DNA of 64,000 nt from NCBI GenBank assembly GCA_000708835.1, contig DF237108.1, positions 1 through 64,000 of the forward strand, in the 5' to 3' direction. This document shows positions 12,647 to 47,800 of the stretch, in pieces. This stretch comes from Klebsormidium nitens. Lineage: Eukaryota > Plantae > Klebsormidiophyceae. The notes below the pieces were generated by a model, which was not told the DNA's origin, made no database searches, and saw only the letters and a program-made list of their open reading frames with translations. The stretch's first letter is position 1. Every line of letters starts with the position of its first letter. Position numbers and translations under genes: made by a program.

Positions 12647-12839
12647 GTACCCTGCACAGTCCTCGGTACAGCAATCAGGTTGTACAGCACGATCAAGTGT
12701 CATCACCACCGTACCTCGATCTGGTACGCAACATTGATCTGGGTAGTGGGTACCTTTAACCTACGTACCGTACCAGGCTAGCGGCTCCCGCTGTACCTAG
12801 TACCTATGTACCGGTACTCGTGACTAGTGAGTACGGTAC
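12647..12839. promoter_or_regulatory. Dense GTAC cluster (candidate SBP-box/CuRE-type element array)
   Basis: 14 GTAC by manual count in 193 bp, against under 1 expected at uniform composition. It lies about 0.9 kb upstream of the gene at 13771. Function is inferred only. Confidence 0.35.
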
Positions 12840-13770
12840 ACTCCAGGTGCTCAGGTCCAGCGTTAGGTATTGTCCGCCAGACACCGCGTCTCTGCAGGCA
12901 GGCAGTAGGAAACATCCATCATGAACGGCCAACTTTAAGTTTGAGCCATACATATCATCCTGGTTTCGCTGCACATCACCCATTATTCTTTGCCATGCAT
13001 GCAAATGATAGCTCCAAAGGCCACTGGCAAATGCTGATAGGGAACGTCAAAATGGGAATTCCCTGTAGTGTACGGTACCCTGACTGAGCAGCCAAGTTCA
13101 GAGCTCCCCTAAAATCACTGGCAGGAGCATGATAGCTGAACGGTCTGGTGAGGGATCTCCCAAGGGGCAGTGGTTGGGAACATTCTTCAGGGTCCATTAT
13201 AGAACAGGCGCCGGCGTTGAATGAGGTCTGAGAAAAGCGTGTCCCCTTTCACAAAGACGGGGAATGCGCATGTTCGGAAACGGCCGTGACGCAACCCTCA
13301 AAACGGCGGCAGCTTTGGTAGCTTGAGAGCGACTCCTGAAGGGCCAATATAAGAGCCCTATAAAAGGGTTCCCCTCGCGGTTTCTTGACAGAATGAGGAT
13401 CGTTGCAAACCGCAGAATTTGGAAAGTCCCTCAGAAGCGGCCGCTTTGAAGCTAGAAGCCACTCCTGAAAAGGCTTGAGAATGCAGCACAACAGGACAAG
13501 GACAAGAATTCGAATGTGCGCCGGCACATTCTGGGTGCAAGCTAGGTCTCTTTGAGCACAGCTCCATTGGCGGGGTCTTGTTAACGCCAGGCCGCCGCTT
13601 GGCCAACAACTTGCTGACAGCTGGCGCGGTTTTGCTCAGGCTTTAACTGGTGGCTTTCAAGACAGCTTTAACAACCAGAAGGAACGGGCGAGTCCTGGGC
13701 GCCTCACATGTTCGATGCCGGGCGAAGGTGATCACAGCTGTCGCATTCCTTTCCATTCGGAGCGGCGACA

Positions 13771-16700: not shown

Positions 16701-19700
16701 GTTTCCCTGAATTGCATATGTTCTCCATACGTCTGTCCCGTCCCCTCGGATCCAGCTCCTTCCACTCTTTCGTCGTTCGTCCTCATTTGGTGTCCGCTTT
16801 GTATCTTGTATATCTGTACCGTGTCTGTGGTAAAATGGTTTGCATCCAACTTGTATTCGTACACCTTTCTGTACTCCTATCTGGGACAAAAGTGTTTCCA
16901 TTCTGAAGTCCATCCTCTCTCCTTGCGCTTTCAAGGACCGCTTCAAGACCTGCCTTCAAACGTGCTTCTTTCAAATGGATGAAAGGCGTCGACGTTTAGA
17001 ATTTCTACCACGGGCGACTGAATGCTGCTCATCATGTTGCAAGCTCAGAAGACTTCCAACGTACGCACACGAAGCTAGGGAGTAGACACCCACTACGGCT
17101 CAATCTCTTTTTGATTTACCCGGTCACTCAAACAACACGCCTTGTGCATCTTCTACTACTGTTTCCATCTTTCCAGATTCATCATCGCACGAACGCGCAG
17201 TAGCCCACTCCTGGCTTGTACAAAACGGTTGCCAGCTGAGGACTGAACTGGGACAGAAGCATCTCATTATTCTTCTAAACCCGCCTTTTCTTGTTTTCTC
17301 TGCAGCATCCGTCCGGGGGGATCCCTCCCGAGCCTTCGCCGCTTCCCTTCCGACCCCCCCGCGCCGATCGAACGCGCGCTCCCGCGCCGGGATCAAGAGT
17401 CGGCCGCCCTCCTCCACTTCCCCCAACTCGAGCTTCATCGCGACGTGCCGTTGTCCGACGCGGCGCTGACTGCACTCGCCATATCACTCGGTCTTTTCCG
17501 CCGCGAGGGGGATCCCCTGGGCACGCTTCCCGAGCTCGTGCCACGTGTCCCTGTGCCCGCGGGGGGGCTGCTCCCTGAGCGCTCAGCGGGGCTATCCGGC
17601 GCCGCCGGAAGAGTTTCCGACCTACCCCCGGCGGTGCTCCAAAGAGTGGCGTCCGCGCCCCCTTTGGTCGGTGCAACTCTTCCGACGCTCATCGTTCCTA
17701 CCGACCCTGCACTAGAGTCCCCGGGGGTGGTCTCAGCCGTCCAGCTGGCATCATCGGAGGGCAGCCCAGCCGCCACGTCGACGCCCGCCAAGCGGCCGAG
17801 GAAGCGGACTGCGAGAGGGAGGGCCAACGAGGGACAACTAGAGAAGGCTCCGTCTCTGAAGCGGCCGCCCAGCCCAACGCCAAACGCTCTCAGAGACCCG
17901 GAAGATAACCCGCCGCAAAACCCGGGCGCGGCGGCGGACCCAGCTAACTTGGCGCCAAACCGGACGGTCAGCGGGTGGTCCGTACAGAGCCTGGATGATC
18001 CCCGGGCCGACATTGGAGGTCAGGACACGCGGCGCCCTCTGAAGAAGCCACGTGACGTCTCCCCGGGCGGGGGTGCGACGATGTCCGCGCACTCCAGTGG
18101 GGGGGCAAGCGCTGCAGGGAGCCTCAGCAAGTCGGCGGCCCCCCCCGAGAGCGAGGGGCCGAGGGAGAGACAGGAGGAGAGGGCGCGTAAGAGAAGCGCG
18201 CGCAGAAGTCTGTGAGTCGCTTTCCAATCACGCACTTAGTTTAGCTGAAGGTTGGTTTTTTACTAAGCTAAGATACCGAACAAGAGGGGCTGAAGAGATG
18301 CACGGGTCAACCGAAACCGCGCTTCTGACAAAAGCTGGCGAGTCGCTTCAGATTCCGAGGGGAGCTCTTACTGTATGCTCTCTCCTTTTCTGCTTGGTTC
18401 CCGACGAGTCCTCTGGGGAATTTTTTGTCTGTTTTCAGTCTCGTCTTGACTCGCTCCCGTCAGACTCCCGCCCGGTTTGCAAGTGCCTTTCGGCAAGTCC
18501 GCCTTATGTCTCTCCAATCGCTTGCAGACTCCTTCTCTTCTTCCTTATTTCCTCTGCCATTGGTCGTCTTCTGCCTAAACACTCTGTCCGTCTTGTGCCT
18601 TTCAAAAGTGACCCTACGTTCTCGGCCTCCCCACTTCGTTCTTATATTCTGACTTCCTCTTGTTGCTTCTTCCGTTTCTTTTCTTCTACCATCGTGCAAT
18701 GTCGCGCGCACCGTTTGCGCAGGCCGCGCGAGCAGTGCGCGCGCAAACCTATTTTCTTTATAAGCCCAGGACGTCCGCGCGCTCTTTGCTTCCTTCTCCT
18801 CCCCCAATGCGCCCCTTCCACTTTATCTCCGTATGCAACGCACGGAACCTCAGTCAAGACGGAGTGCGCTACCCTTCCTCCTTAAAGCGCGCGCGTTTCA
18901 TGTCTGTTTGAAGCCCCATCCTCTCCATCGCGCGACCTCCCTTTTGAGCCACGCGCATTCCCTTTTGCCAACACGAAGCGGTCTTCCTGTCCTTCCAAAA
19001 GCGCGCGCGTTTTGTTCGTCCATAGCTGCGCCTCAACCTCCCGATGCGCGGCATCATTTTGAGTCCCGCGCACTCTCCCCTACAGGCTGGACAAGCTGCG
19101 CAACAAGACGTGCGGCTGTAAGCAGGACTGGCCCGACGACATGCAGAAGCTGTTCGACCTGTCACAGAAGCAGTCGAACGACCTCCGCTCTCTGCGCGGA
19201 CAGCTGGACCACGCGAACCGCCGCGACTCCCTGCAGGTGGGTCGCCGACTTTTTCGGTGACACATTTCAGCCTAGCCCGAGCAACCTCTTACTTCCTCGT
19301 GTCACTTGCTTTATTTTTCGACGGGTGGAGTTGGGTCTGGTGGGTAGAGTGAGTGCGGGTGCGGAGCGCGTTTGATTTACGGTTTGCAGTTCGGTTTGAC
19401 GAAGGTTCTGCTTTCCTGTCGTACCTCATATTGTCGAAACCGTATGTTTCCGGTCCGACGCTGAAGCTAGTACTGAAATCCACCGGCTGACCTTGTACAG
19501 GTGGTCTGGTCACAGGCACGTTCAGCAATTATCATTCCTGTTTAAGTGCTTTAATTTCCTCGGCTTTGGTTCTTGTGTTCGACTTCTCGCCTCGTTCTTC
19601 GCTCCGTCCAGCCTCCCGAGTCCAGCTTTCTATAGCCTGGCAAGCAAGAGCTTTTCCAAACCTTTGGTTTAGGTTTTCGTCGTAATCTGGGTTTAGGTTT

Positions 19701-28679: not shown

Positions 28680-31600
28680 ATGGCTAAGTTGCTCGTGCCT
28701 CTCTGCCTGGCGTTGCTGCTCCTGGGTGCACAGCCTGTGCAGGGGGATATTTACATGCACAACCCCCGGGGGTCAAACAATAAGCTCAATGAGGTACGTG
28801 AAAGTCTACCTTTGGAACAACCCAGGGCACCTCTCGCTTATCCCTTAGTGTAATGAAAGATTACACTCTTTTGGGGAGGTTCTTGTTACCACTTTGTTGA
28901 TCAGCGAGCAGCACAATGCAGGTGGTCTGGTTTGCATCCTTGTGGTTCAGCGGGGCACTTGTTTTTCTGCGGTGGTAAAGCACAGGGTTTCTTGACCATA
29001 GTCGGTCACGGGCTGGTTTGAAGCTGGTCAACTGTCTAATGACCAGACTCGAGCAGTGGCCAGAATTCTAACATGGTCATAACGCGGTTACTGGTAAAAG
29101 AACCGGACTGAAAATTGGTTAGTGAACATGGTTAGCAGCCAAACCTTCATGTGAAGCTGAGGTCTTGCACTGAATCTGACTGGACCAGAAGTCGGACAAG
29201 CTCTGATGCCCCGGCCACTAATGGCATCGCCCCATTGTAGCAAAGCATACTGTGCAAAGGACCGCGAGTTTAAAGGAGATTCTGAAGAGCAGCATTCTAG
29301 TTCTACAATCTGAGTCGCAAATGGAATGGTGCAAAAGCACTGAGCCTGCAGCAATGGAAGTTTCCAGAGTCTGACGCGTTTACTGTCCTGTCAGACTTGA
29401 GCCTTAGGGGCAGACAACGGGGATTTTCTGCTTGTGCCGTGTGATTGCGACATCCACCAATGACACCACCTATCATGCAATTGCAAGCGGACTGGTACAA
29501 GTTTCTGACCCCTCGTTTCCAACCCTGCCCTCAGCAATCCAACACCCGGAACAACGCCAACCGGTTATTTGACAGCCAAAACAACGATAATGGGGGGTAC
29601 CAAGTCGGCGACAACTGTCAGCCTGTGTGTCAAAATGCGAACCAGCAGTATGACAGCCAGAAACCTGGAGCGGGGAAAGGAACGATGTACTATTACGCAG
29701 GGTCGGAGCTATCCTTAGAGTGGACAAACCAGCACGCTTGCGCGCCGGAGAATCTGGGGCCCAACACGCGGTGTGACATCATTATCCAGGTGAGCAGGGT
29801 TGGGCCAAGTGGGGCTCATTTCTTCTGGTCACACAAGGACAAGACTTTTTTTGTCTGGGGCGCTTTGAGCATTGATAATGCTCCCTGTTTCTTGGGGGCG
29901 ATATCTGGCTGCGGTGAAAGAACAGAACCGTTCGTCCACCATGTCAAAAGCGGGTATCCTTTTTCGCATCTCCATCACTCTGGGAGCACATGATCTGCTT
30001 GTTTCAAACGGCAATACACTGGCCTGGGCACCGACAATCTCCAGTGCTTACTTCAAATCCAGCTCGATCAACTCGTCCGCTATCACGTACAACCTCTCCA
30101 CTGCTAGAGTTATGTCAGTAATGCAACCCAATCCGCAAAAACGTCTTCAAAGTAGCCCACTTGCGCTCACTCCCGCTTTATTTGAAAGCAATCCTCCTTC
30201 TTAACCCACAGTATGCTTGCGACTCGACCCCCGCTGACAACAGCACGCTCCGGGACGGAACCAAAACGACTACCATCACTGCCACGTCAGCGGGTGACGT
30301 GGACCCCTCCTCTGGTCGCCACGAGTCGTTCCAGTATTACAGTGACTGCCGGGCCAGGCAGCGGAACCGGGGCCTATTCACAGCGGACCGTAACATGCGG
30401 GATGACATCGGCGCGACGTCGACGAGGCAGAACGAGAATGGCAACAGGTGGGCTGCCCGGAAATCAGACGTTTCGGAGATCATATTTTAATGCAAATATG
30501 CCCAAATCATGAAGGCAAGCGGCGGGACATGTGAGTCGCCCTTTTCTTACTTCCTTTGTCTATTTCCCTTCAAAAGGACCCGTTCTTGAACCTTCCTTCG
30601 CCATCCCTTCTTGTCCAATGAGTCGGAGAAGCATCCGGACCATAAGCGTCCCTGCAGAAAGATAACGCTTCTCACACATCTCGTTCTTACACCCTCCCTC
30701 TTGTGAATCTCGCCAGCCTTCTTCCCAAAGATTTTGACTTTAAGGCGGGCGATGAGGGCCGTGCCATTCTATGTCGATGCCTCTCCTTACAAAAGTCATG
30801 ATACTTCTCGATGACGCCGTTCCTGTCCCGTTATTAGATTAACCCCGCATGCCAACCTTTTTAACCCGGCAGAAGACATCTCGATTCTGCGTTGCCTTGA
30901 GCGTATGTTGCGCGAGATCATTTCCCTGGGCTCAACAGATCAACATCCTAGATCCAACATTGACATGCTCCGCACCCGTACCCACCCTAAATCTCCAAAT
31001 CAAACCCACTCGTCTCCCGAGCGTCATCTAACCCAACATAGCCCTAAAGGAAACATAAGATTGGTGCTATTTTCTGCAGGTACGGCTTCGAGTGTCCGGA
31101 GGAGCGTGACTACTACCCGTACTGGCACCCAACCATGTGGAACGACGCGGCGGTGCTGACGTCAGACACCACCCGGTGTCCGTACTACGCGCGGGAGAGC
31201 GAGAACGTCAAGGGCAGAGGTGAGAGCATCTGAGACCGTTTTTATGCCGCTGCCTGCAGGTCAAGATTCCATGTGAGCATTTAACAGAGGTTTCCTGATG
31301 CCGCCTGTCCCTTGGATCGCCCATCTCAACCGCTTGTTCGGCCGCAAACCTTGGTAGAATTTGGCAGCTCGATGTGTTTTCTCTGTGGCTACTGCCACGA
31401 TCTCGAAGCGTGCACGTCATGAGTTGGGTATATGCTCCCAAGCCTGCCTTTAGGAGGTGCCGACTTTGACTGTTGACATCAATAGAAATTGCTGATTTGT
31501 GCTACCCGCCACAGATTTGAAGAATGCGACTCACGAAGCAGGATAGGCTCCCAGCCGACCTTCTGACGGAGTTGTCAGCTTTGCCTATCGACATGGTGAC

Positions 31601-34600
31601 TTTGGAAACCCTGCAATTGAACCACGACTGAAAAGCATGTGAGTGATCAGGCAGGACTAGGCTCAAGCCGACCACTCAACCAAGCTGCTGATTCTGACTC
31701 TCAACCAAGCGACGAACACGTTCATCTCTGCTCTCAGGTTTCTGCTCGCTTCCTCAGTACAACAACCAGGCCGCCTGCGAAGGCGGCACGGCAGGCGGCA
31801 CCTGGACTCAAACGTCGCCGCGAAAGTTGCCGCCCCCTTTCTGCGGCCCGGTGCCCATCTCCCGGGACAACCACCTGGGAGACGTCGTCGGGGGAAGCAT
31901 GGCCAGCTACAATTGGACGCTGCCAAACCCGCCCCCCGGTCTCACGGTACGGACCGGTTGATGGCTCCGCTTGCTTAGCCTTCGCTCCTTGATGCTTGCT
32001 GTCTTCGTACCTAGCGCTTCCACCTCAGGAATCGGTGCTCTTCGCAGCCATTTGGTGTGCCGCGCTTCCTGTGTTTAGAAAGGACGAAACAGGGTGGGAG
32101 ATGTGACGTATATGCGACGTGAGTGTAGACGTAGTTTCAACCCTGGCTTCAGCGCGCGAGGTCCTCTCTCTCGCCCAGTTCCGCTTCCGGGTCCGTGCCG
32201 CGCTTCCGCTCGCTCTCCGCTCTGTTGCAAGAAAACGTTCTTTTGTCTTTTCGCATATCCCGTCTCGGCTGTCGAAGCAACGTTTTTGAGCAAATGTTCT
32301 GAGCGGAGACTCTATGTCAAAGCGACACGCTACCTCTGCAGGCTGCCACGTGTGTCCTCCGCATTCGCTACAACATCACGACGACCGACTTCACCGCCTG
32401 GCCGGTGGGCCGATTGGATGGCGTAGACTCGCGAAACAACAATGATCGGAGCCCGGTTACCAATAACCCGGAGAAAGACTACCTCGGGTTAGGGTACAAC
32501 AAAACAGGCCCATTGAGACTAGGTAAGAGTCAGCGTCCCTTGTTATCGATAACCAGGGGGGAACTTCAATGCTAACCCTCCTTGCTTGAATTGCGGGAAA
32601 AGGTATTTTGTGGCCCAGGGGTTGGAACTGGCTGGGAAGCTACGAGCTCCCATTCTGCGGCCCTTTTCATGCAGTGCGCTTCTGGGATCAGCTGTAAAAC
32701 GAGAAGCGATAACGGTTTCGGTTGACGACGTTCTCAGCTCCGTTCTACATGACGGCACAGGCTCACAGAATCACTTCGTTTGTCTCTGCCTCTCTGAGAT
32801 GAAGGGCCGACTCAATGTAAGCCTAGTTGAGCAAGCGAGGGTTCACAACGTCAGCTTAGAGACAGGCGTCGTATCGAAATATTCCTAACCCTTCTGTTTT
32901 ATCTTAAAAACGTGCCCTTCCGTTCTCGCAGCGATGAACACCGCCCAGTTCGGACGGACCTTCCAGGACCGGTCGCACGTGTGGGTCCTCAAGTCGCGCC
33001 CCGCTGACGTCGACGATGACACGCGCATCATCAACGTTAACGTCAGAGGTAGGAGGGGGAACATTGTACAGGTGAGGTTCTTGTTCGAACGTCTTTTGAT
33101 ACTTAGATGCTCACCTTTGACACCCGTTTCGTGTCGCATTTTATAAGCAGATTTGGCGAATGGTAAAATGCAGGAACACGAAGCTTCCTTAGGAAAACTT
33201 CCTTGAAGCTCAAAACCTTTTGCAGCATGCTGATCAGCGTCTCTGGCGATCATGGAACGACTGCCGCACCCTTTCCAGAATCGGAGTGAATTTTCAAGCT
33301 TGTCATACGCGCATTCAGCCGTCAAATCCTCTGCATTTGACCTGCAGGTGTACCCTTCCGTTGAGTACGACTTCGTGCCGACGCGCTTCCACGCGGGTGT
33401 GGGCGACCTGCTACATATACAGTGGACTGGCTCGGACGCCAATAGCCAGGGGAACAATGGAAACGTACGTCCGTAGCTGGGCCTTAAGAATCCTCACACC
33501 TTTTCAGATTCTGTATGGAAGTCTTGGCTTACGAACGTATCAGAAAGAAGCGCGCGGCTTCGTGCTTCGCTGTCCGATCTCATCCCCCTAGAACCGCCCG
33601 AGACGTAGTAAATGTACAAGAGGGCACAGTGACGTCAAAGTGCCGGAGTCAGAGGACAGACTGACTTCAGCGGATTTGTATACAGCGGTTACTAGATTGG
33701 AAACGTACCTCGATGCTGACATCATGATGTCATAAACGCAGGGCCGGACGTCGACGGACCGCAGCAACCTGGTCCAGATCGCGTCCGCGGCCGCGAACGT
33801 GCCGCTGTCCGCGGCGTCCAACACGCTGCTGCTCGCGCGCAACGGGAGCGCGGACCCCGCGGCGCTCGCGCGCTTCGCGTACCTCAACCAGACGGGGTGC
33901 AACGCGGGGGAGACGGACCAGAACGCGCTGGACAACTGCAAGGTCAGGAAAAGGTTTGGAAAGGTTACGGATAACCAGCTAACCTTTAAAGTTCAGATTC
34001 GGACGAGACTCAAAGTTTTTGGTGTGGAGTCCTCGTAAGGCTGCGATGATCCAGCAGAGTTCAAACTTCGTGAGCTGCTTAGGGTAACAGTATCAGAAAA
34101 TGAAGTGCTCAGTATCGAGACTTCTAAGTTTCTTAGCTACTGTGTATGACCAATAGAGACCCATTGATTTGGCGGAGTCTTGGAGACACGTATGCAGCAC
34201 TGCTACCTTTTCGTCCACCTGCGCTCGTAATTTGAGTAGACCTTCCGCCAAAGAAAAGCCTTCTTGAGCTCAGTCTTACAACTGCATAACCCACTGCTGC
34301 GCCAGGTCCTAAACGCGGCCCCCGCATATTTCGACGGCGGCCTGGTGGAGCTGCGCGCTCAGGGCACCATGCACTTCATGTCGACCCGGAACAACGCCTT
34401 CTCCAACCGGTCACAAAAGTTGACCGTTATCGTCGGCCCGGGGAAAAGAAAACCCAATCTACCCGCCATAATCATTGGGTCAGTGGTCGGGTTACTGGTA
34501 GTTGCAACCGGGGTGTTCTTGCTGGCGGCGTTTTGGGTCGGGGCGGAGGCCGGGGGAGGGGTCGGATTGGGCTCAGCGATCATCATCGCTAGGTAAGCTA

Positions 34601-37600
34601 GACATTAGGACAACGGAGAAATTCGCACTTCGATTTTGCTCCAGCGGGTATAACCTTTTCAAGGCAGGGCAACCGAGATTGAAACTTACGAAACAGGGGC
34701 GATTGAAGGACAAGCAGGTATCTTGTACAAAACCTGATGGGTTTTTGAAACCTTGAGATGTGAGCCCAGGAATTCTTTGAGATAGAAATGTCAATCTGAG
34801 ATTCGCGCCGGTTATCTTCGCAGCTGTGAGAAGGGTTGGCTGGGGCCTCGGTCACGCACTCTATCATCGTGCCTGTTTCATGTGAGGCTCTGGAATTGTT
34901 TTGAAGCATCACAGCAGAAGGGACATATCCGTCTTCGTCACACAACAAGCGGAACCCCTAAGATCTCCCCACATGAAGCATCTGAAATATGAATTTGCTG
35001 AAGGCTCTCTTATGGTGCTTTCGCACCAAAAGTGTGAAAACGGACAGCTATACAACCAAGAATCGAACCAATCCCAAGGTGCCACGTGCCGTGCAGGACG
35101 AAGCGGCGGCTCTTCTTCTGGAGACGGCCCCCAGTGCACTCGCTTGTCACCTCGGCAGCAGCTCCAGGTTCGCCTTTTTTTGCCCACCTCTAGTTTGTTG
35201 CCTCTCCGCACCATTTGTCGTCTCTACGCGCTGTGTCATGATTTCTTCCGCTTTGAAATGGCAAACCGAGCTCGGGCCGTGTTAGACTATCTTGGCAGTG
35301 ACTCAAATTGGGGGCCGTAAGTGAGTAAGTTGATAAGGTGTCCGGCATTAGTTTATCCGCTGAAAAAGCTGCTGAAATTGTGCTGGAAACGGTGGTTAAC
35401 CGGCTTTCAGTTTGCATTTTACAGAAACGTTTGCAGCGCCTCACTTTACCAAAAGAATGATAACAGTGAACAGCAAAGATCGTGTTACAGGCCAGTGCTG
35501 CTTCACACCGGCAGGTTTTGCGGATGATTTACGGAACGGTCAACGAGATCCAGGAAGACAAGTTGAACCTAATCTTGTGGTTTCCAAGTCTCTGATGTGC
35601 CAGCTTCGCTCCAAGGAACGTTGTTTGGAGCACTCTTGAACTTCTACTTCGGACAGGTCAAACCCGCCTTTTCTCATCCTCGCCCAGTGCCGTTAGGAGC
35701 GAGTCAAACGGATTGGTGCTCGCTGTCCCCACTCCGCAACATGTGCTTCAACAGTGCCCATCTAGAGACATAGGAGGAGGAGATCCCAGAAATAACCGAC
35801 TTCTTAAACACCCATCTGCAGATTCACCGGGCGCAATTACGACCGGGCCAAACGGCATGGTGCTTTCCGTTCCCACGCCTCCCGACACCCCGGTGAGAAA
35901 AGGCGCCCCCGGCGGACTAACCGGCCACTCAGGCCCGTATAACCCGCTGGTTACATGGTGGGTTAACCTCGGCCGGGGAAACCGGTTCCTGGGCATCTAC
36001 GGAACGCTGACGGCCGCGGCCGCTCTCGACGGGTGAGCGGCGCTTTGGAGGCTCAGGGTTCTGGGATTTCAGGGTTCTGGGGTTTCAGGGTTTCGGGGTT
36101 TTTGGGTTTTTGGGTTTCCGATTTTCTTTAAAGAAGAAGCATCGTTTGATTGGAAGATAGAAGGGCTGTCATCCCAAGGCCTTAAACAATGTGAGGGACT
36201 GACCTTTTGTCGGTCTCGAGCCTCGAGTTCGTTATGTGACAACTTTGGGTGAGACTTAATTCGCATCCCTTTGAGTATTGATCGTGCGCAGATTTCAGAG
36301 CAATTACCCACGAAATTTGAAGGCCTCGTGGTTCAGTACAGAATCTAATTCGGTCCGCTTATATCTGCTTGTATGAGTCCACAAGTTCTTTCGGTAAAAG
36401 AAAGCTGTTTGGACATTAGTGGTTTGGCTTTGCTTTAAAATGCAGGTTCATCACAAACGTCAGCCGCCTGTCCGGCCCGGCGGGGGCGTTCTTCCCACTT
36501 GCCAAAGCAGGAGGATACATGTGAGGAGCAATCCGCCGCTAACCTCTGAATGATTCAGAAGCTGAGGCAGAAACTTAGGCTCAGAAGGTAAACAGTCCAT
36601 TGAAGCTTTTTGCGGAGGCCGTTGTTCCATGTCTATGTTTGTACGTCTTACGAACAGACTTGTACGAGAATAGTAGCTCAGTCAACGGGACTATGTTGTT
36701 AGATTCTACCCGTCAGCCTCCCGTATGGGCTCATCGAAGTCCTAGGATCCGACACAAATCATCCGGATTGTCGTCCCAGTTGTGACTGTTATCTCTCCTC
36801 TGAGTAAACGACCAGAAACCTATGCGATTCATCTGTGAGACATTCTTTGGGCTTTGCCTGCAGGCTGGACTTCAACTGCACGCTGATTCTGTTCCCCATG
36901 ATGCGCAACATCATGAGCTGGCTGCGGACGACGCCGCTGTCCGAATGGGTCCCGCTGGACGAACACATCACCTTCCACACGCTGGTGAGCCGCAGCATTC
37001 GATGGCGAAGAAAATATAGTCGAAGCTGACGCACGTTCTGCAACATTGTCGAAACATGGAGTTTTCGGTGGTTCAGAGTGGTTTTGAGTGACGAACATAG
37101 TGTATGTCACAAGCTGGTGATCCGCGGCATTCGCCGCCGGAAAAAATGCATTGAATAATCCAGAAGCTATCTTTACCATATTGTCGAACACATGATGACC
37201 TTCGGTGTGAAGTTGTGGTCCTCTGAGCGAACACGTGATACACTTCGGATCGGACAGCGGACAGAGCGGGGACAATGAGAAACAGTCTTCGCAGGATCGG
37301 AGTTGGGGACACTGTTGGAAAGGTGGTCACTGACGTAAGGCAGGGCTTCAATTGGATCCAACCGTCGATGGTCTCGAGGAACTCAATCTGACGGTTCGAA
37401 TGACACCCTAGGTGGAACCTGCAGAGGTTGTGCCTCGCAGCACAGCTTAGAAGCCAGATCTTGCATTCTAGTGAGCATCTAGGGCTGAGAGCACCGCCGT
37501 GGCACCAAATACCGACACCGACACCGTCCAACAGCGTCCCTGCTTCCGGTTAGCGAAGACAACTGTTCCTTGTCCCCGCTCGGAAAGTTAAAGATGAGCG

Positions 37601-40600
37601 AAGATCAAGAACGATGCGAATAAAAATGCAGATGCAGCTTTAGCAGGGTTCAGAGCCCCGCAACCCTGTGTGCAGGTCGCCGCGGTGATCGCGTTCGCAT
37701 CCGCGTTCCACATTGCGATGCACTACGCGGCGGGCGCCCAGATGGGCATTCTACGACATTACGTTATCGAGACGCTGCCTGGCGTCACAGGTCAGCATTT
37801 TACCTGCAAGGTCTAATGCGTTCTACGAAGATCTGCAGAGAAGTCTTGTGTATACATAGATCTCAATTCTGGTTTGTTTTTATGCTCGTCCTTCTTCCTA
37901 AGAAGCGTGGTTGCTCAACAGCAGAGATATAAAGAGAAGCCAGCTACTCTAGCGTGAAATTTTCAAAGACTATCCCTGTTTCTCGAGCTGAAATTCTATC
38001 TGCTTTTCACCGAAGGAAACAAGCTCATCCATTCTGACTACTGCAATATTAGTTAGGCCGTACACTCCAAAGAAAATTTCGCTCGGCAGGATTACTTGGG
38101 GTTACATACTCTCAGCTCCAAACCATGAGCCGAATCCAATGTTCTCAAATCAATCCCCCTCTGCGCAGGCCACCTGATTGTGCTCCTAATGATCCCCATG
38201 TTCTTGACCGCCCACAACAGCATCCGCCGGGGCAAGGGGTTCAATTTTCGAAAGCGCAAGATCGGCGGCTACGATCTCTTCTTCAACGTGCACCAACTCT
38301 ACATCCTAGTTTTCATTCTTCTTTGGATCCACTCCCCGTCTTTCCACAAGTGGTGCTTTTGGCCGGTGGTTCTATTCATTGTGGATAAGCTGGTGGGGCA
38401 CCTGCGGTCGGGGCGGGAGGTGCGCCTGCTGCGGGCCTGGTGAGAATACGCCCCTGCTTTCATCGGGCTTACGTCCGGTCATTCTAGGCTCACATCCTGG
38501 GAAGAACTCGCCCCGTTCTTGACCAGTGCTTGCGTCCTGGTGATAAAAGGGTCCTGTCCTTGTTTGGTGCTCACATCCCAATAAATGGCGCTTCTGCTTC
38601 TTAATATTGTTATTCCTATGGCCAACATGCTCCTGTGATTCTCTCGATTATGCTATACCCAAGCGCACGTTGCTGACAAAATCCTACTCACTTGATCTTA
38701 CGTGTATAGCATTACGTCTGTTCTATTGCCCCCTGCTTCGCTCCAATCCTCTGCAGCGGGATCGTGGGCTGCGGGGTGTTGTGGGCCAAAATTAAAATTA
38801 ATTTCCATTTCGATTGCTGCCTCTTTTGAAAGTGCATGCCAGGAATTCTGACTATCATAAGCTTCGCTTTGGCTCCTGCAGAGTCTTGAGAAAGTACCCA
38901 TTTGAGCCCCAACAACTGCGTGCCTCAAAGACTCACGCTCTCACGCTCCCTTTCTTCGCAGCAACGAGACGACCGGAACGGATGTGATGCGCATCGAAAT
39001 GGCTATCGACCGGTTCCACTACAAACCGGGGCAGTACCTGTACATAAACTGCCCGGCGATCTCCAAGCACGAATGGCATCCGTTTACCATTACGAGCGCG
39101 CCGGAAGAAGCGATCGTGTCCGTCCATATGAGGACACGTGGCGACTGGACGACGGGGCTGCGGCAGCTGCTGAATCCGGAGAACCTCAAGGAGGTGAGGG
39201 CGGAAGGATATCAAAGATGGCTAATGCAAACATCTCTAGCGCCTGACTCTCGTCCCAGATTTGAATCAAAAGCTCAGTTGACAAGCTTGTACGTGAGCGG
39301 ATGAAGAAGAGTGGGAAAGGCGTTCTGATCATGAGTTCTGTAAGATTCCGCTAGAGCCACCCTTGCAGACGAGGACTACGAGTCGTGGGTCCAAAAGGAT
39401 GCAAGCGAAGTCCCTCAAACAAATCATTTGGGCGATGGTAAATTAAACCGTAATACTTGTACCAAACCAGGGTCTCAAAAAGCAACATGCGAAGCACTAG
39501 GTAAATAAATCAATCAAGTGATCAACTTTGACGTCCCGTAGGAGCCATGAGCGGTCCTAGGATTGAACTAGTCCGGCTTGCCAAATCAGACCGCTTCGAT
39601 TTGAGAGTCGATCCTTTTCTCCCAGGTTGACTTCTCTGACATCAGCGCCTTGTCCCGGGCGTCCGCCCCAGCCACCAGCGCGACGCGCGCCAAGCCGCTC
39701 TCACCGCTCGCGCCCGCGTCCGCCCGAAACCCTAAAACCCCGGACATCGCCGATGCGAAGAAACCAGACGCGAAGCCGGCCGCGGAACCCGTAAAAGAAA
39801 ACGAAACCCCTCCCGCAAAGACGTCGTTCTTCGGCGGGCGGGGAGCCAAGCCCCGGGCGAAGCCCGAGCTTGGGAAAGGAGAGAAAGATCCCGGGGGATC
39901 CCCCCGGGCGGAAGCGTCCCAAGCTACCCCGGCCAGCGTGCAAGCGCTGAGCAAGATCGCCGCTCAGAAGGAAGAGAACGCGGTACCCACCGGGCAGGGA
40001 GAGGTTCCTGGTACAAACCCGCCGGGCGTTCCGCTCGAGCAGGTCGTGAGCGGGGAGCGCCCGGCGGGAGGCGCTGCGGCCGCGGCCGCGACGCCGCTGG
40101 CGCGCGCGGACGCGATCTCGCGCGCGCCCTTGATCCGGGTGGACGGACCATATGGGTGAGGAATTCTCCAGGATAGGTATGAAGAGCTGCAATCATATCC
40201 GACGAAGCTAAGGTTAACATTATACTTCCAATATGCCTTAGAAAGCCGTAACCCGACCTCTAATTCAACTTAACACCGTCAGTTAGACCCTGATCTGAGC
40301 ACGTGTCAACCTAGGAGACGGTGATGCTTGTGGGTGCCGGGCCTTGTGTAACACTCGTGTTTTGTAGCACACTTCAACCGATCCAATCTCTCCAACCCAC
40401 CTCTAACCGAGTTGATTAACCACCTTAGGGCGGGGTCTGAGCACGTGGTGGACTACGATACGGTGATGTTGGTTGGCGCCGGGATCGGTGTGACGCCGTT
40501 TGCCGCCGTCTTGAAAAGCATCCGCCTCCGCTGGCGCCGCCAGGCCGCGACCGGGGGGCCGCTGGACACCGTCTTTCCGCTCAAGGTGAGGGCGGAACCG

Positions 40601-42072
40601 GAGCCGCTTGGCGGATACCTTGTTGGAAATACTTTTGGTTGCAAGCACAAGTGGGGGAAAGAACGGATAGTTCTGGCCTTTTTTCGGTTATTTCGAATCG
40701 TAATCAATTGCTTATCGCATGTTAAGCTTCAAGAGTCGTCACGAATCGACGTTGAAAGCACAAAGTCCTTGTGACCCAACCCAACAACCCCTCAACTTCT
40801 GACCACGTAAGACTATGTAACAAACCTTGTTACATCAGACACTCAGAGAGGAAACCACACCGAGAAGCAAAGCGTTGCTTATAGCCGCTAACCCAGATGT
40901 TGAAAACTCTGGCTAAATTTCGCCTGCAATTCTGTAACCCAGGTCTACTTCTATTGGATCTGCCGCGATCGGCAGGAGTTCAACTGGTTCAGCTGGCTGC
41001 TCGCGGAGCTCGAGCACGAGGACGTCAGGTAAGCGCGCGCGCGCGGCCGCGCACCAGAACCCTTAAACCCTTGCAATCCCAAGTTTGCGCCCGGGAAGCC
41101 AGCACGGTGCTTCGATTCTCCTGCAAGAAAGTTGTGTCAAACTTGCATTTGGTTCAGCTTTCTTATAGATTCAGTTCTAAAGAACAGACTGTCCGGCCGA
41201 CGAATAGTGACCTCATTACTCCCTTTGTTGTTACAAACTGGCTCTTCTGCCCTCGTTCGAAGCTTATCTGTCGTTTTCTTGTTGGTCCAGGCTAATACCT
41301 AGAGATTTGAGCGATGAGAGGCAGAACATCTACCCGAATTGTTTCAATGATTTTTTGACCTCTCGGTTAGCCACATGCCAGCGGTTCCCGCTTAACCACC
41401 TCGATGGTAAATCTCATGCTTAGCGCTTTCGCCGTCTCTCTCCCCAGGCTGAGCAACCGGTTCGAGATCAACACGTACATGACCGGCGAGTTAAACCTGG
41501 ACGAAGTCGTCACTCAGAACAAGGACACGTCAGCAAAGAAGGGCGCGGAGGTGAGACCCCGCCTCACGACCTCTCAACATGTTGCGCTGCGCAATCATTC
41601 CTCACTACCAGTATTCTTCCGAGGGGCAGAACAACTAGAGTTGAGTAGAGCCTTCGAGCACCTCGTTTATGAAGCCCGATCTGCATGTATGTGGTCACGC
41701 TTGTGATTGAGAGGGACAAATCGTCCAGTCAAAGGTCAAGCTTTGGCAGCGCGCCACAGTTGCTTGCTCCAGTAAAATCGACGTCACGAACTATCTTGCA
41801 GCAGATTAGTGGGCAGGAAGTATAAACTGTTCGCACATTCGCTTCGAAATAATAACAAGATTCTCGACGCTTTGCAGGTCGCGTGGGCCGGCAAGAAGTG
41901 GGCGGGGCGACCCAACTGGAAGCGCATCTTCAAGAAGGTCGCCGAGACGCACGGCGGCAAGACCGTCGGCGTGTTCCTGTGCGGCCCCGGGGCGCAGGAG
42001 CTGCGGGACGCGTGCAAGAGCAACACAACGCTAGGGGGAGCGACCTTCGACTTCCACAAGGAGAACTTCTAA
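28680..42072 (+). CDS. DD3-3-family ectodomain fused to an NADPH oxidase (NOX) core, 22 exons, about 1348 aa
   Basis: Exons 28680-28793, 29535-29789, 30212-30447, 31080-31219, 31738-31946, 32342-32522, 32932-33071, 33348-33464, 33742-33942, 34306-34592, 35097-35167, 35822-36032, 36446-36520, 36864-36984, 37676-37790, 38169-38439, 38962-39193, 39626-40155, 40429-40585, 40943-41028, 41448-41550, 41878-42072. All introns are GT-AG, total 4047 nt, no internal stop. Both halves are secure. Their joining depends on the 71-nt exon 35097-35167. Confidence 0.8.
28746..34434 (+). other. DD3-3-family extracellular domain (after a 22-aa signal peptide)
   Basis: Signal peptide [22 protein letters not shown]. 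Motifs [121 protein letters not shown] and [13 protein letters not shown] match my recollection of Dictyostelium/animal DD3-3 proteins. Many N-X-S/T sequons are present. Confidence 0.85.
35950..42072 (+). other. NOX catalytic core: 6-TM bis-haem domain plus FAD/NADPH dehydrogenase domain, no EF-hands
   Basis: Haem histidines [16 protein letters not shown] (14 apart) and [15 protein letters not shown] (13 apart). FAD motifs [38 protein letters not shown] motifs [35 protein letters not shown], and C-terminus FHKENF. Confidence 0.95.
36056..36114 (+). repeat. Intronic array of eight G-tracts (telomere-like, G-quadruplex potential)
   Basis: agggttctgggatttcagggttctggggtttcagggtttcggggtttttgggtttttggg begins about 23 nt after the donor at 36033. 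Confidence 0.7.
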
Positions 42073-43528
42073 TCAAAGGTTGATTTTCCGGAGGGTTGAC
42101 AATCAGTAACGGGCGGAAGGCCGGCGAGCTTGATGACGAGGCGCAAGAAGAGATCATGTAAACGGCGGGTGTTACCCCTAAAAGCAGCAAACAGAGGGGA
42201 GAACACCGTAACGTCTACCAGGCAGTGTCTGCACGGGAACGGCCAGAGTGTATTCTATGTATAAGGAGGCTAGAATTGGGCGGGGCAAGTACTATATATG
42301 GTGGTACACTTATATTCATGCGACGTTCGGTGGCCTGTGCCAAGAGCTTCACTTGATGCGTCTAAGTGGTTCACCCCGAGTACCGTCCGTAGGGCTTGCA
42401 ATGCCTTTTCTGTGTCGAGCTCCTGATATTAGTGCGCTTGTTTTTCGACCCAATTGAACGGCCCACGTTTGGTACGTGAAAGAGTTAGACGGTTCGATAG
42501 CGGGCAATCCCTAAGATGGTCAGAATGTAAACCCCGTTTGGTCCCATGGTGGACGCGGGAAGCGGCGTATGAACCTTTACGGTTTAAATTTTCAAGATTG
42601 AAACGCTCCGCTTGCTGGGGGTAGATTCGATAGGTTAGAGGTAAGGACAAATGCTGGGCGGTTCTTGCAGAACTTTGATTGGAATATGTACTGCGACCCT
42701 TGCTGATACAAAGAATAAGTTCGTTGCAAGCATGAAAATATGCTTGGGCAAAGGATTGCGCTCCGCTTCGACAGGCGGGAGACTCGACTTATTTACTGTA
42801 CTGACGAAGTGATTCTGAACATGTCTCATTGACTAATGCCTTTTGGCAACGTTCAGCGGTATCAACGAGTCAAATAATCGAATCGAAACCAATTGCGCTA
42901 TGTATCCTGCAAGGGATCACCTTCCGTCGCTTGACGTGGCTGAGGGCACATGGTGAAACATGTGGAGCAACTTCAGCACTCTCGACTCTTTTGCCATGTA
43001 AATCCAGCTAGTAGAACAGCAGAAAGTAACCAACTCAAATCTGCTTTAGTTGTGCAATCATTCCAGCTCGGATTCGCATTCTCGGGCAAAAGAAACTGGC
43101 AGAGGCGGAGTATGTTGTGCAATTACGTTCGAAGTTGGCGGCTGCCAAAAAGAGATGGTGCACTGCACGTGACCTCGGTAGTCAAAGTCAAGCATGTCCA
43201 TATGCACATCCATGGTGGGAATCGCGCTGGTCTTTGTACCGTGAGCTCAGGTGTGCCAGCATTTGGATCGATCGTACGTAAGCAATTGACTGAACCGACC
43301 AGAGATACCACTGACGTCATGCTAGAAAACGTCACCCAGATTTGCAGCGAGGTGACCAGTGTCGGAAGGATGCCTTGAATCAGCTCCTCCCAATCAGCTC
43401 CGAAGTGTTCACTCGTTTCTGAACATCTTCGTCCTTCTTTAACGGAAAGATTTCGACTTTTAAGCAACATCTTTTTGTTTTCCAGAGTGTCGATAGTGAG
43501 AGCTCGGCATATATGCAATATATTTGAA

Positions 43529-44539: not shown

Positions 44540-44843
44540 CTTTCTTCCTCTTTGGGCCTTTGTTTCACTGCACCTGATTGAGCTACTTGTGCTCTGATTT
44601 GTTGATTACTTATAGACGCCAGGTGTCCGTTTCTGATTCGCCCTTTCTGGCGGCAATGGGGCACAAAACAAGCAACAACAAGTTGAAGCTTGTGTGGAAT
44701 CATGTTCTCAAAGTCAGCATTCTCAGCATCGCCTTGAACGGCGTCATTTTGAGCAGAGGCACCGAGGCGATGAACCTCCTGGCAAATGTAGTACCGAGGC
44801 CCAGCAGAATCCTCTAATCCAACGTGAAAGTTTGCTCGTCGTC

Positions 44844-47800
44844 ATGGCGCCGCTATCAGCATCAGTGTATGCGCGGAAGAAGAAAGATAAACGAGCAAGT
44901 GGCAAGCCAGTTGCGAAGAAGCGACCCGGCCCAAAGTCTAAAGGAGCTCCTAAAGAAGCAGCGGATGCCGCGCCAGCTGGGCAGAAAAGGAAGCGCCCAA
45001 CAGAGATAGTACCCAGTGCTTCAAAACGAGCACGGAAAGCGGGTGGCAGGGGAGAAGATGCATCCTCTATTTTGGAGAAGAAGCAGAGAGTTGCTAAGAA
45101 AAGGGATCAAGCTGCCAAATCAGAGGAGAAGAAAGTGAGGGCGGCAAAGAAGGAGGATCAGACGGTGGCTGCCAGTGAGAAGAACAAGGTCAAGGTGTCT
45201 GTATCCTCTGCATTGCAACGGGGGAAGAAGCCGGCAAGGGCTGGAAAGACGGCGGACGTAGAATCAGCGCGTTCGAAAGGTAAAGGGACAGGTTTGGGTG
45301 AAGATGGAAAGAGTGCAGCGGGCCAGGGCGTCAAGCGGAGACCCGGGCGGCCGGAGCAAAGCAAGGGAGGGGATGAGCCAAATGGTGGGGAAGAGGTGGC
45401 GGTCAAACGAGGACGTGGGCGGCCAAAGAAAAGTAAGGAGACGGAGGAGGAGAGCGGTGCACAAGAAACAGCTGTCAAAAGGGGCCGAGGCCGGCCAAAA
45501 GGAAGCAAGAACAAGGATAAGGGGAGCAATGCACAGGAAAGAGCTGTCAAAAGGAACCGTGGGCAGCCGGATAAAAGCAAGAAGCCGGACAAGCCAAGCG
45601 GGTCACAGGAAGCTGTCAAAAGGGGTCGGGGGAGGCCAAAGAAAGCCGAGGCAGAGGAGAATGCAGGCTCTGATCCAAAAGGCAAAAGTGGTCAGAAGGG
45701 TGGAGCAAAGAAAGCGCCGCCGCCCAGAGCAAAGTACCTTGACCGGCTGGAGTTCGACGGCACCCTGTTCGAAGCGGGCGACTTTGTCTACATCAAAAAG
45801 ACTGACGGGGACAAAGAAGAGTCTGACGAAGAGCTTGAGGAGTGCCGGGTCTGTGGGAACTGCCCGCAGGAGGGGGAGGACATGCTGGAGTGCGACACCT
45901 GTCTTGGGGGTTTCCACTTGGGGTGTTTGGACCCCCCCTTGGAGGAGGTTCCGGAGGGGGACTGGAATTGTCCGGCGTGCTGTGGGGCAGAATGTGGGGA
46001 CTGGGTGACCAGGACGAGGCAACGGCGGCGCACGCTGAGGGAGCGGTATCTTGCGGGAGAGTTGTACATGGCAAGGATAAACATGTGAGCTGTTTCATTA
46101 TTCAAGTGTATGTTGGTGCAATGGTGGCGGCTGTGGGCTTTGATAGGATTGGGGTCTGAAAGCCTAGAAAACATTGTGCACCACAGAAAGTATGCGAGGA
46201 GCTGGACCGGGTCGACGTTTGGATATGTGGAGTAATTACGGGTTCCTGGGGGTGAATGCTAACTGTGTCAGAGGCTTGACTGGGTGCTGCCCATGATAGT
46301 CAATGGGGGCCTCGAAGCCTGCCTCAACGGTACTTAAAGTCCTGACCTCCTGAACAACGGCAAAATGAGTTGAAGCTTCAATATTTCCATCTCCCAATCT
46401 CCATATTGCTTTCAGACAAGATATTGAGACACCAACGCAACACGAAGTCAGTGCACAGATGGGTGGGGTCGTTGGGGGGTAAGTGCTGGTAGGAATGCAG
46501 AGAATATACATCTTCAAGTTTCTGGTTGTTGATGTAAACTATTTTGCGAGCCTAAGCTGCTCACTATCCTTGCTTGTCTCACTTTCTCTAGAGATCTATC
46601 ATATTCGCGTTAGCCAAAATACTTAAGAATTCAAAGCTAAAGCTCTTTTAATTGCAGGATGTGGCAGGAGCCCAACGGCGACTATTACTTCCGGGGAAAC
46701 TGGTTGGACATTCCAGAGGAAACGCACATGGGCAGGCGTGAGCATAACCACCGGCGGGAGGTCTTCTTGTCGACTCTGGAGGACGATGTTTCGGTAAGCT
46801 GCTGGGAGCCATGCTCAGATAGCAAACGGCTGCCCCGTGCCGCAAAACGTGTTTTGACACCTGGCAATTGGCAACACGGTCACCAGGAATTTCGAAATTC
46901 TCTTCAGAGCATGATTTGAGGGAGGAGATGTCGGTTCAAAACTCGTAAAGTGACTCTTTGTCTAGGCAGAGCTTATGGTTTGTCAGGAGACAAGCCAAAC
47001 CAATTTGCAAGTCTTTACCACTGTGTTCAATTTGAAGGACCTCTCACAACCTTGGACCAAGAGATCCCTTTTCCGAAGTACATTTGTTTGGGCTTATAAG
47101 CTGATACATTTTGCTGTGCAACTGGGTGCCTGCTCAAGCCCCGGTATGGCCCACTGCAAAGGCCGATGTATTGGGCATAGATCATAGTATATTACAATCG
47201 GAAATGCTAAATCGTCGTTTGGTTTAGTCAATCATGCTGCCTTCTGCTTCGCTTCATCGGAAGGATTCTTGTGCATATGCAACATCTGAAACTATCCAGC
47301 GTATTGCTTTTGAACTTGCTGTATACTGAAAGCGTTCCTTTCTGTCAGATGGACTCCATTATCCGGCATGCGTGGGTGTACCCGCGAGAGCGCTTCGAGC
47401 AGGCGGCCAACGAGGGTGATGACGTGTACCTGCTCGAGTATGGGTACTGCCCACGAACGCAGCGCTACAAGCGGATCGACGACATTGTGGATGACGGGCG
47501 GGGCTGGAATTACGAGGTCAGCGCTCTGCGGCACTTTGCAGCCGTTTTAAAAAGTTACATGTATGAGTTTCGAAACCCGATTCCAAGACTTTAACAGCCT
47601 ATCTACGGCGTGATAAAGTTTGTAAAAAGTCGTACTGCCGATTGACGTCATTGCAGATGATGGATGGGGCTGGTATTACGAGGTCAGATTACGGCGAGTC
47701 ATTTTCGTCGGAGTTTACAGAATACCTTGAAACTCTTAAGAACTGATTCTAGAGTGCCTTAGCAGATTGCATACGAAATGTTAGAAGTCTGCAGAGACAG

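Follow-up and report, generated by a model that had tools for sequence, protein, structure and literature searches.

A single spliced gene on the forward strand of the window, a 64,000-nucleotide stretch of Klebsormidium nitens DNA (assembly GCA_000708835.1, contig DF237108.1, positions 1 to 64,000), is confirmed to encode a fusion of a DD3-3 ectodomain, an extra transmembrane helix (TM0) and a complete NADPH oxidase (NOX). An earlier, sequence-only reading of this DNA had proposed one protein of DUOX-like topology in which DD3-3 replaces the peroxidase domain. The single-protein reading is supported because RNA-derived splice joints connect both halves, full-length homologues align collinearly from end to end, and a collinear fused locus is present in Cymbomonas tetramitiformis. 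Fused architecture together with NOX-type electron transfer is assigned to the window protein with high probability.

The gene was rebuilt independently from tblastn anchors provided by fused homologues, combined with scoring of GT-AG pairs for frame, phase and collinearity with the homologues. The resulting model comprises 22 GT-AG exons at 28680-42072 (+) with a coding sequence of 4047 nt and no internal stops, and its 1348 amino acids (aa) reproduce the length of about 1348 aa given in the sequence-only reading. Translation starts at ATG 28680, the earliest ATG of the open frame, and ends at the stop codon 42070-42072. The host region is intron-rich and eukaryotic, with a GC content of ~52%; its splice sites, its use of TGTAA and its nearest relatives, Cymbomonas and Nephroselmis, are indicative of a green alga. 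The features of the gene are the following:

28680-28793, 29535-29789, 30212-30447, 31080-31219, 31738-31946, 32342-32522 (+): exons 1-6 of the DD3-3-TM0-NOX gene
32932-33071, 33348-33464, 33742-33942, 34306-34592, 35097-35167 (+): exons 7-11
35822-36032, 36446-36520, 36864-36984, 37676-37790, 38169-38439 (+): exons 12-16
38962-39193, 39626-40155, 40429-40585, 40943-41028, 41448-41550, 41878-42072 (+): exons 17-22
28680-28745 (+): signal peptide, aa 1-22, seen as a hydrophobic N-terminus
28746-34461, introns included (+): DD3-3 ectodomain, aa 23-583, exons 1-10, assigned by homology to fused and stand-alone DD3-3
34462-34539 (+): TM0, the extra transmembrane helix, aa 584-609, Kyte-Doolittle peak 2.72
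34594-34596 (+): in-frame TAA right behind the exon-10 donor (AG/GTAAGC), read from the sequence
35097-35167 (+): bridging exon 11 of 71 nt, coding for the basic stop-transfer stretch and the first part of the cytosolic linker, from RNA contig X1 record 2 and the overhang of run X3
35822-38439 (+): exons 12-16, remaining Pro-rich linker and six-helix ferric-reductase (haem) domain, from RNA joints, Pfam Ferric_reduct and NOX2/NOX1 alignment
38962-40155 (+): exons 17-18, FAD-binding domain with HPFT at aa 954 and GDWT, ending in VDGPYG (Pfam FAD_binding_8, E 4e-20)
40429-42072 (+): exons 19-22, NADPH-binding domain, C-terminal FHKENF and stop codon (Pfam NAD_binding_6, motifs)
42157-42161 (+): first TGTAA past the stop, 85 nt after it, a candidate green-alga-type poly(A) signal

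RNA evidence was obtained from Logan contigs of four runs of the same organism, all from one study, which were mapped to 32300-38200 and give seven GT..AG joints in this zone. Five of these, 33464>33742, 33942>34306, 36032>36446, 36520>36864 and 36984>37676, do not flank exon 11, and because the top-scoring pair coincides with the RNA joint at every one of them, the splice scoring is validated. Introns beyond the seven confirmed by RNA are the top-scoring GT-AG pairs that keep the frame and the collinearity with the homologues. Exon 11, which the sequence-only reading had named as its weakest link, is real, and its two joints, 34592>35097 and 35167>35822, were found as predicted. Allowing for ambiguous letters, both are read from X1 record 2 (190 nt, depth 3), which consists of the last 20 nt of exon 10, followed by 70 nt from exon 11 and a further 100 nt from exon 12. 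In a contig of run X3, moreover, exon 12 is preceded by a 10-nt overhang, GCAGCAGCTC, identical to the end of exon 11, which backs the joint between exons 11 and 12. At the joint of exons 10 and 11, the side of 20 nt falls short of the bridging rule of 31 letters; by our own estimate, a chance match of a 20-mer at the exact, phase-correct exon-10 donor would occur at ~1e-12. RNA contigs do not represent single molecules. Within intron 11, a stretch of 58 nt (35413-35470) is matched with one mismatch by a 270-nt contig of run X4, flanked by 132 and 80 unlike letters. On neither strand is the match bounded by clean splice sites, and it occurs just once in the window; a rare alternative exon, an antisense RNA, a chimeric contig and an element from another part of the genome are all conceivable.

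The same architecture is found in many other eukaryotes. A search of 1.84 billion cluster representatives with the largest 5' exon (29445-29990) returned 272 matches, namely proteins of ~600-780 aa and a set of 1246-1430 aa matching at the N-terminus. All ten long matches tested with Pfam contain Ferric_reduct and FAD_binding_8 in their C-terminal half, and nine contain NAD_binding_6; the tenth, P0038, is C-terminally truncated. With the fused homologue P0020 as query, 1286 matches were obtained at E<=1e-10, and most of the best 120 are proteins of 1050-1490 aa with NOX Pfam domains. The annotated protein of the window locus is absent from the matches of both protein searches. The sequence-only reading had suggested looking for DD3-3 plus NOX in other algae and protists, and in at least 108 proteins (of 403 retrieved), from algae to fungi, the two halves indeed follow each other as they do in the window protein; the median length is 1340 aa, and the matches to the halves lie 77-315 residues apart. 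Many fused homologues are complete open reading frames on single transcriptome contigs of 4.2-4.6 kb. Aligned to the window by tblastn, the long proteins of the first search give collinear + strand matches that span 28.7-42.07 kb, and single high-scoring segment pairs with fused homologues run through TM0 and the linker, joining model residues 8-997 to P0173 of Nephroselmis (50.5% identity), 23-1348 to P0020 and 22-1348 to P0016 of Ceratiomyxa.

Members were identified in the green alga Nephroselmis pyriformis, in the Symbiodiniaceae (Symbiodinium, Cladocopium, Durusdinium and Effrenium, with several copies) and in the other dinoflagellates Gymnodinium smaydae and Yihiella. The chytrids are represented by Spizellomyces punctatus (SPPG_05133), Gonapodya, Gorgonomyces, Phlyctochytrium, Boothiomyces, Rhizophlyctis and Globomyces, the aphelids by Amoeboaphelidium, the amoebozoans by Ceratiomyxa, the malawimonads by Gefionella, the diplonemids by Artemidia and Rhynchopus, and the stramenopiles by a pelagophyte. 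Some of them bear automatic database names such as 'Protein DD3-3' or 'FAD-binding FR-type domain-containing protein'. An orthologous fused locus, collinear with the window gene, lies on LGRX02000370.1 of Cymbomonas tetramitiformis (43-17696), with ectodomain exons at 43-4172 and the remaining ectodomain, TM0 and NOX at 10516-17696. In the public annotation this locus is split into a 518-aa gene and a 787-aa 'NOX' (P0234), evidently because a reverse-transcriptase element interrupts it; P0234 starts inside DD3-3, covers its C-terminal part and continues through TM0 into NOX. The ~6 kb between the two ectodomain parts hold a reverse-transcriptase (RVT_1) gene on the opposite strand.

Separate phylogenies of the two halves, likewise suggested by the sequence-only reading, both set the fused type apart. 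In a quick IQ-TREE phylogeny of NOX cores (48 rows, EF-hand NOX5-like outgroup, no DUOX or FRE sequences), the fused cores and fragments of fused genes form one clade with a support of 97 in the approximate likelihood-ratio test (SH-aLRT), apart from the NOX1-4/NoxA-type (94), RBOH (100), SH3-NOX (100) and EF-hand NOX5-like (100) groups. The window core groups with Cymbomonas, Nephroselmis and two further sequences (99), and further supported groups unite the chytrids with the aphelid, the dinoflagellates, and the diplonemids. In the ectodomain tree (55 rows), the fused type occupies one side of a branch (94), and stand-alone DD3-3 of animals, Planoprotostelium and Diacronema the other. Five rows labelled stand-alone fall on the fused side; four of them are truncated or partial predictions, and P0047 may be a genuine short form. 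Both trees fit one old fusion that would have been inherited largely vertically, and the window protein would belong to an ancient monophyletic NOX subfamily, spread across eukaryotic supergroups, with the DD3-3 ectodomain as its hallmark.

The order of signal peptide, sequon-rich Cys-containing domain, hydrophobic helix, basic stretch and Pro-rich linker was recovered as the sequence-only reading had placed it. Directly behind the signal peptide, the mature protein starts with D-x-Y-(L/M)-H-N-P-R-G-S-N-N, a motif conserved in the homologues. The mature part of the ectodomain, which comprises ~555 aa, contains seven N-x-S/T sequons and 14 Cys residues. TM0 corresponds to a hydrophobic helix in all fused homologues (helix 565-598 in the model of P0176) and is followed, up to the exon-10 donor (34592), by a Gly-rich hydrophobic stretch. 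The helix and the basic stop-transfer stretch RTKRR, encoded by exon 11, are both present, but they are separated by 17 residues that the sequence-only reading had omitted. The cytosolic linker of ~90 aa is Pro-rich (PTPPDTP) and extends to about aa 700. No EF-hand loop pattern occurs in the 1348-aa model, in line with the sequence-only assignment to the EF-hand-less NOX, and no EF-hand Pfam family was detected in the fused homologues; a peroxidase Pfam family was found neither in the window exons nor in 15 homologues. Alone among the fused homologues, P0174 of Gefionella okellyi carries SH3 domain families alongside its NOX domains, and this SH3 domain most likely sits in the long insertion between its TM0 and NOX. 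Because of the signal peptide, the sequons and Cys residues of the outer part, the positive charges behind TM0 and the SH3 families of P0174, the DD3-3 domain lies outside and the dehydrogenase domain inside, and the topology, with seven transmembrane helices, is DUOX-like.

Two further features of the cytosolic region were observed. SH3 also occurs in a separate small clade of NOX proteins without ectodomain (P0307, P0314), and its presence both there and in P0174 hints at regulation via proline-rich partners. Just past the transmembrane helix, animal stand-alone DD3-3 proteins (P0275, P0278, P0264) and many fused proteins share a juxtamembrane motif, (R/K)xHPxxK, exemplified by FRRHPDKW, FKLHPKKW and RKHPDKR, which suggests that a docking site in the cytosol is ancestral; in the window protein the motif is missing.

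For structure and database work, P0173 of Nephroselmis, whose ectodomain is 57% identical to that of the window protein, and P0176 served as proxies; the window protein itself was analysed locally. Its ectodomain shares 51-57% identity with the closest fused homologues and 38-44%, over residues 1-580, with animal proteins named 'protein DD3-3-like' from corals and molluscs. The domain has no Pfam model, and Pfam searches of the DD3-3 exons and of 60 ectodomains gave nothing meaningful; a profile search of the PDB sequences with the ectodomain alignment found nothing. The alignment of 60 ectodomains, from protists to animals, has 46 invariant columns, mostly polar or aromatic. Among its conserved blocks are STRNNxFSNRSQK and an invariant acidic cluster, E-C-P-E-E-R-D; six His residues are conserved in at least 52 of the 60 sequences. 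Using this alignment, with P0173:1-585 as its first row, AlphaFold2 produced a model with a predicted local distance difference test (pLDDT) score of 87.6 and a predicted template-modelling score (pTM) of 0.88. Because this model matches Dictyostelium DD3-3 (Q58A42) over its full length with an E of 7e-59 and a template-modelling (TM) score of 0.85, the ectodomain is confirmed as a true DD3-3 domain, as the sequence-only reading had proposed. The fold search also returned other DD3-3 clusters, including the Spizellomyces fused protein.

Outside the DD3-3 family, only residues 405-578 of the ectodomain find fold relatives, and these are cupredoxins: plastocyanin, purple cupredoxin, Cu nitrite reductase and domain 1 of laccases, Fet3 and ascorbate oxidase. 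The match of the P0173 model is found by Foldseek at E ~3e-4 with a probability of 1.0, and by VIA with a Z of up to 6.8 and 94 of 95 residues aligned (Z 5-6.8 over 94-119 residues for plastocyanin, Fet3, laccase and Cu nitrite reductase). In contrast to these relatives, the C-terminal ligand loop is replaced by the invariant STRNNxFSNRSQK, without conserved Cys, His or Met, and only H445 is conserved within the domain; a type-1 copper site was rejected, the His/Cys/His/Met ligands being missing from the conserved columns. Residues 24-400 reach a VIA Z of 4.4-5.2 to AA9, AA10, AA13, AA15 and X325, which is within the stated noise range of the tool. A language-model search gave weak leads (0.58-0.62) to LPMO_10 (0.62) and Copper-bind clusters. 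Membership of the lytic polysaccharide monooxygenases (LPMOs) was rejected, since the N-terminal His is missing and Z is only about 5; His residues near the mature N-terminus are less than 80% conserved in the 60 sequences. The ectodomain presents redox-protein folds without textbook metal sites. In the model of full-length P0176 (1159 aa, pLDDT 79), the ectodomain is followed by a 34-residue TM0 helix, a disordered linker and the NOX core.

The NOX core spans about aa 700-1348 and, as described in the sequence-only reading, contains all four haem-ligating His residues and the complete FAD and NADPH motifs. The His pairs H784/H798 (spacing 14) and H866/H879 (spacing 13) are located in helices 3 and 5, and both bis-His haem sites are invariant in 60 fused homologues. 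HPFT at 954, GAGIGVTP at 1185, CGP at 1319 and the aromatic C-terminus FHKENF accompany the three Pfam domains. Alignment with NOX2 and NOX1 equates R760 with Arg-54 of NOX2, H784/H798 with His-101/115, H802 with His-119, T824-G825 with Thr-178/Gly-179 and H866/H879 with His-209/222. Residues reported to separate NOX enzymes making reactive oxygen species (ROS) from metalloreductases are His-101 and His-119 as well as Thr-178 and Gly-179 (PMC3591440), and all of them are kept in the window core as H784, H802, T824 and G825. The NOX part of P0173 (residues 690-1265) scores best in sequence with NOX2 (E 1e-50), followed by NOX5 (1e-46) and DUOX1 (4e-42), and the core of the P0176 model likewise superimposes best on NOX2 (Z 31.7, 35% identity), ahead of NOX5 (Z 29) and DUOX1 (Z 26.6). 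FRE-type reductases are absent (0) from the matches to the NOX half.

Some peculiarities of the core were noted. Exon 18 (39626-40155) encodes a low-complexity insert of ~170 aa, rich in Ala, Pro, Lys and Ser, which lies in the FAD domain between GDWT and VDGPYG. Its length is uncertain, as the in-frame acceptors 39626, 39998 and 40043 score nearly equally and RNA does not settle the choice; variable inserts occupy the same place in homologues. The cytosolic loop that precedes TM5 (aa 840-860, exon 16, about 38214-38276) carries a family-specific basic insertion of ~11 residues, and the family lacks the long, glycosylated E-loop that NOX2 has on its extracellular side. Both the pre-TM5 insertion and the missing E-loop are common to the three fused homologues aligned.

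Most probably, the product is a type-I, seven-helix NADPH oxidase. After cleavage of the signal peptide, the glycosylated, disulphide-rich DD3-3 domain resides outside and TM0 crosses the membrane; the basic, Pro-rich linker without EF-hands lies in the cytosol, followed by a canonical six-helix, two-haem NOX core whose FAD and NADPH domains face the cytosol. Electrons would pass from NADPH via FAD, the inner haem and the outer haem to O2 at a conserved Arg/His pocket (R760/H802), and superoxide or H2O2 would be made on the outer face, directly beneath the tethered ectodomain, as in DUOX. We infer that this NADPH-driven production takes place without control by Ca2+ and EF-hands.

To our knowledge, no NOX type other than DUOX has been described that combines a large N-terminal ectodomain with a seventh helix. 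DUOX1 and DUOX2 share with the fused protein the ectodomain outside, the linker inside, an extra helix before the six-helix core and ROS formation beneath the ectodomain, and two alignments of the P0176 model with DUOX1 reach TM0/M0 (model residues 581-1159 to chain residues 608-1551). However, the peroxidase-homology domain is missing in the fused protein, which has DD3-3 with its weakly LPMO-like and cupredoxin-like folds instead, and the cytosolic linker lacks the EF-hand pair. NOX2 provides the best match to the homologue cores in both sequence and fold, and NOX1-4/NoxA resemble the fused family in being devoid of EF-hands and in their haem, O2-site, FAD and NADPH motifs, down to the C-terminal KENF. 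Nevertheless, the fused cores form a clade of their own (97 versus 94), and the family differs from NOX2 in lacking the long E-loop and in possessing the 11-residue basic pre-TM5 insertion, the variable FAD insert, the ectodomain and TM0. From RBOH, NOX5 and NoxC the fused proteins are distinguished by the absence of N-terminal EF-hands; their clade is separate from RBOH and from EF-hand NOX5-like cores, in the tree that does not contain DUOX. Stand-alone DD3-3 proteins (Dictyostelium, animals, HrSMLP1) have the ~550-aa ectodomain with the STRNNxFSNRSQK block, a signal peptide and a single transmembrane helix in common with the fused form (PMC10022678). They differ in their short or unrelated cytosolic tails, in an additional ~180-aa segment before the transmembrane helix of the animal forms, and in the position of their ectodomains on the opposite side of the tree.

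Several points weigh against the fused oxidase as outlined here or against a chemical role of its ectodomain. RNA support is thin, since it consists of Logan contigs of depth ~3 from a single study and one side of the exon 10>11 joint measures 20 nt, and shorter forms may exist that stop at the TAA behind exon 10 or start internally at M663 in exon 12. The full-length AlphaFold model has a pTM of 0.55, so that packing of the ectodomain on the outer face of NOX is not confidently predicted. The LPMO-like matches are weak (Z about 5, noise range), and the mature protein begins with Asp (D in 54 of 60 sequences), not with the His of the LPMO histidine brace. Judged from the sequences of the 60-row alignment, the cupredoxin-like domain has no type-1 Cu site (Cys/His/Met).

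The most basic alternative concerns the gene itself. A pair of neighbouring genes, a TM-anchored DD3-3 ending at TAA 34594 and an EF-hand-less NOX starting near 35858, with the joined RNA as occasional read-through, was a serious alternative because reading through intron 10 runs into the TAA right behind the exon-10 donor (34594-34596); if intron 10 were retained, the protein would end there as a TM-anchored DD3-3, a type of protein that occurs elsewhere. An ATG in exon 12, the RNA depth of only ~3 and the short 20-nt side of the exon 10>11 joint point in the same direction. However, the spliced fused form accounts for all RNA observed across the zone, with the contig of a second run passing from exon 11 to exon 12; no coverage was seen inside intron 10 among the contigs mapped to the zone, at low depth. 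Exon 11 joins its neighbours exactly, from phase 2 to phase 1. TGTAA is absent from the + strand between 32816 and 39339 and hence from the gap between the halves, which agrees with the sequence-only statement that the signal is missing in 34.6-35.8 kb and follows the NOX stop. Furthermore, the same order of ectodomain, TM0 and linker is found in the at least 108 proteins of many supergroups, many of them on single cDNA contigs of ~4.2-4.6 kb, and the window core sits in a clade that is fused everywhere else. Two separate genes are thereby largely refuted and have become very improbable.

Within a single fused protein, the task of the ectodomain is the point on which interpretations diverge. 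By analogy to DUOX, it might use or convert the ROS made beneath it rather than act as a passive anchor; we consider this conceivable, with chances somewhat short of even. Alternatively, the protein could be a receptor-oxidase in which DD3-3 senses a ligand, the wall or adhesion and gates NOX via TM0 and the linker without redox chemistry of its own. Stand-alone DD3-3 proteins carry the same type-I ectodomain on differing cytosolic ends (short tails in animals, tetratricopeptide repeats in Planoprotostelium), and the Gefionella fused form has an SH3 domain, most likely in the linker; such variation is what a conserved sensor with exchangeable output modules would show. A canonical metal site is absent from the conserved columns of the ectodomain, HrSMLP1, an ascidian homologue, is a glycoprotein of the haemocyte surface with a link to allorecognition (PMC6916515), and a Dictyostelium DD3-3 knockout is described, as cited in a passage of PMC6208332, as altered in aggregation and cyclic AMP signalling. 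Yet a conservation of 38-57% identity from algae to molluscs, with 46 invariant positions, is unusual for a receptor, both fold relatives of the ectodomain are redox-protein folds, no ligand of DD3-3 is known, and it is not evident how a signal would be passed on by a linker of such varying length (20-150 aa), which leaves a receptor-oxidase doubtful. Even less probable is a transmembrane reductase whose haem core feeds a metal centre or substrate on the ectodomain, for example to reduce Cu/Fe for uptake or to reduce an extracellular redox enzyme, in analogy to FRE reductases with Fet3 or Ctr, or to MsrQ with MsrP. Such a function would be in keeping with the cupredoxin-like part, which is as similar to the first domains of Fet3, EfeO and FtrB as to plastocyanin, with the weak LPMO/X325-like matches, with the six conserved His and the acidic cluster as possible metal ligands, and with the automatic name 'predicted ferric reductase/plastocyanin' given to one member by the Joint Genome Institute (JGI). 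It is contradicted by the core, which keeps the O2-site and NOX-signature residues H802, T824-G825 and R760 that metalloreductases lack (PMC3591440), ends in the NOX-type FHKENF and clusters with NOX, with no FRE-type reductase among the matches to the NOX half (the tree held no FRE sequences). The type-1 copper ligands and the histidine brace are both missing as well. We accordingly rank oxidant use or conversion before ligand sensing and gating, and these before reception of electrons or metal.

In the searchable literature, with subscription-only literature outside reach, no paper mentions 'DD3-3' together with 'NADPH oxidase', and neither the Spizellomyces locus tag nor the combination of cupredoxin, NOX and ectodomain retrieved anything. 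Publications on DD3-3 were limited to expression lists, ascidian allorecognition (PMC6916515) and Dictyostelium, and the broad studies of NOX evolution that were found do not describe the architecture. The sequence-only suggestion that the fusion is undescribed thus holds, apparently, for the searchable literature, but not for the databases, where at least 108 predicted proteins already display it. Massari et al. (2022) reported EF-hand-less 'unclassified NOX-like' proteins of Chlorophyta and Chytridiomycota outside eight named classes (PMC9421330). Likened by description only, these agree with the fused family in lacking EF-hands and in their phyla, and the family probably explains part of them; however, the paper mentions neither an ectodomain nor an extra helix.

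A second, independent lineage of ectodomain-bearing NOX alters the picture of NOX diversification; its members occur in green algae, alveolates, stramenopiles, Discoba, malawimonads and Amoebozoa as well as in early fungi. The fusion also constitutes a first mechanistic lead for the DD3-3 family, which ranges from Dictyostelium to corals, molluscs and ascidians and whose highly conserved surface protein is obscure in function, since it ties the family, in the manner of a Rosetta stone, to extracellular ROS or electron transfer. Extracellular superoxide of algae and coral symbionts is widely measured and poorly assigned. The fused protein, of which the Symbiodiniaceae possess several copies, represents a candidate source, and its chytrid, aphelid, dinoflagellate and algal members offer tractable systems for expression. 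A far-reaching and rather unlikely extension would be that DD3-3-NOX forms an ancient, unnamed NOX class, possibly of early-eukaryotic age, whose ectodomain is a redox or ROS-using enzyme fed by its own oxidase. If it were such a self-sufficient extracellular oxidase, the stand-alone DD3-3 of animals and slime moulds, with its links to allorecognition, immune responses and aggregation, would act together with ROS that a separate NOX or DUOX supplies.

Two flanking genes were recognized in the window. The open frame 656-1792 (+) encodes the start of a protein-kinase domain (Pfam, E 1e-12), and the open frame 44694-46088 (+), ~2.6 kb downstream of the NOX stop, a PHD finger (Pfam, E 7e-10).

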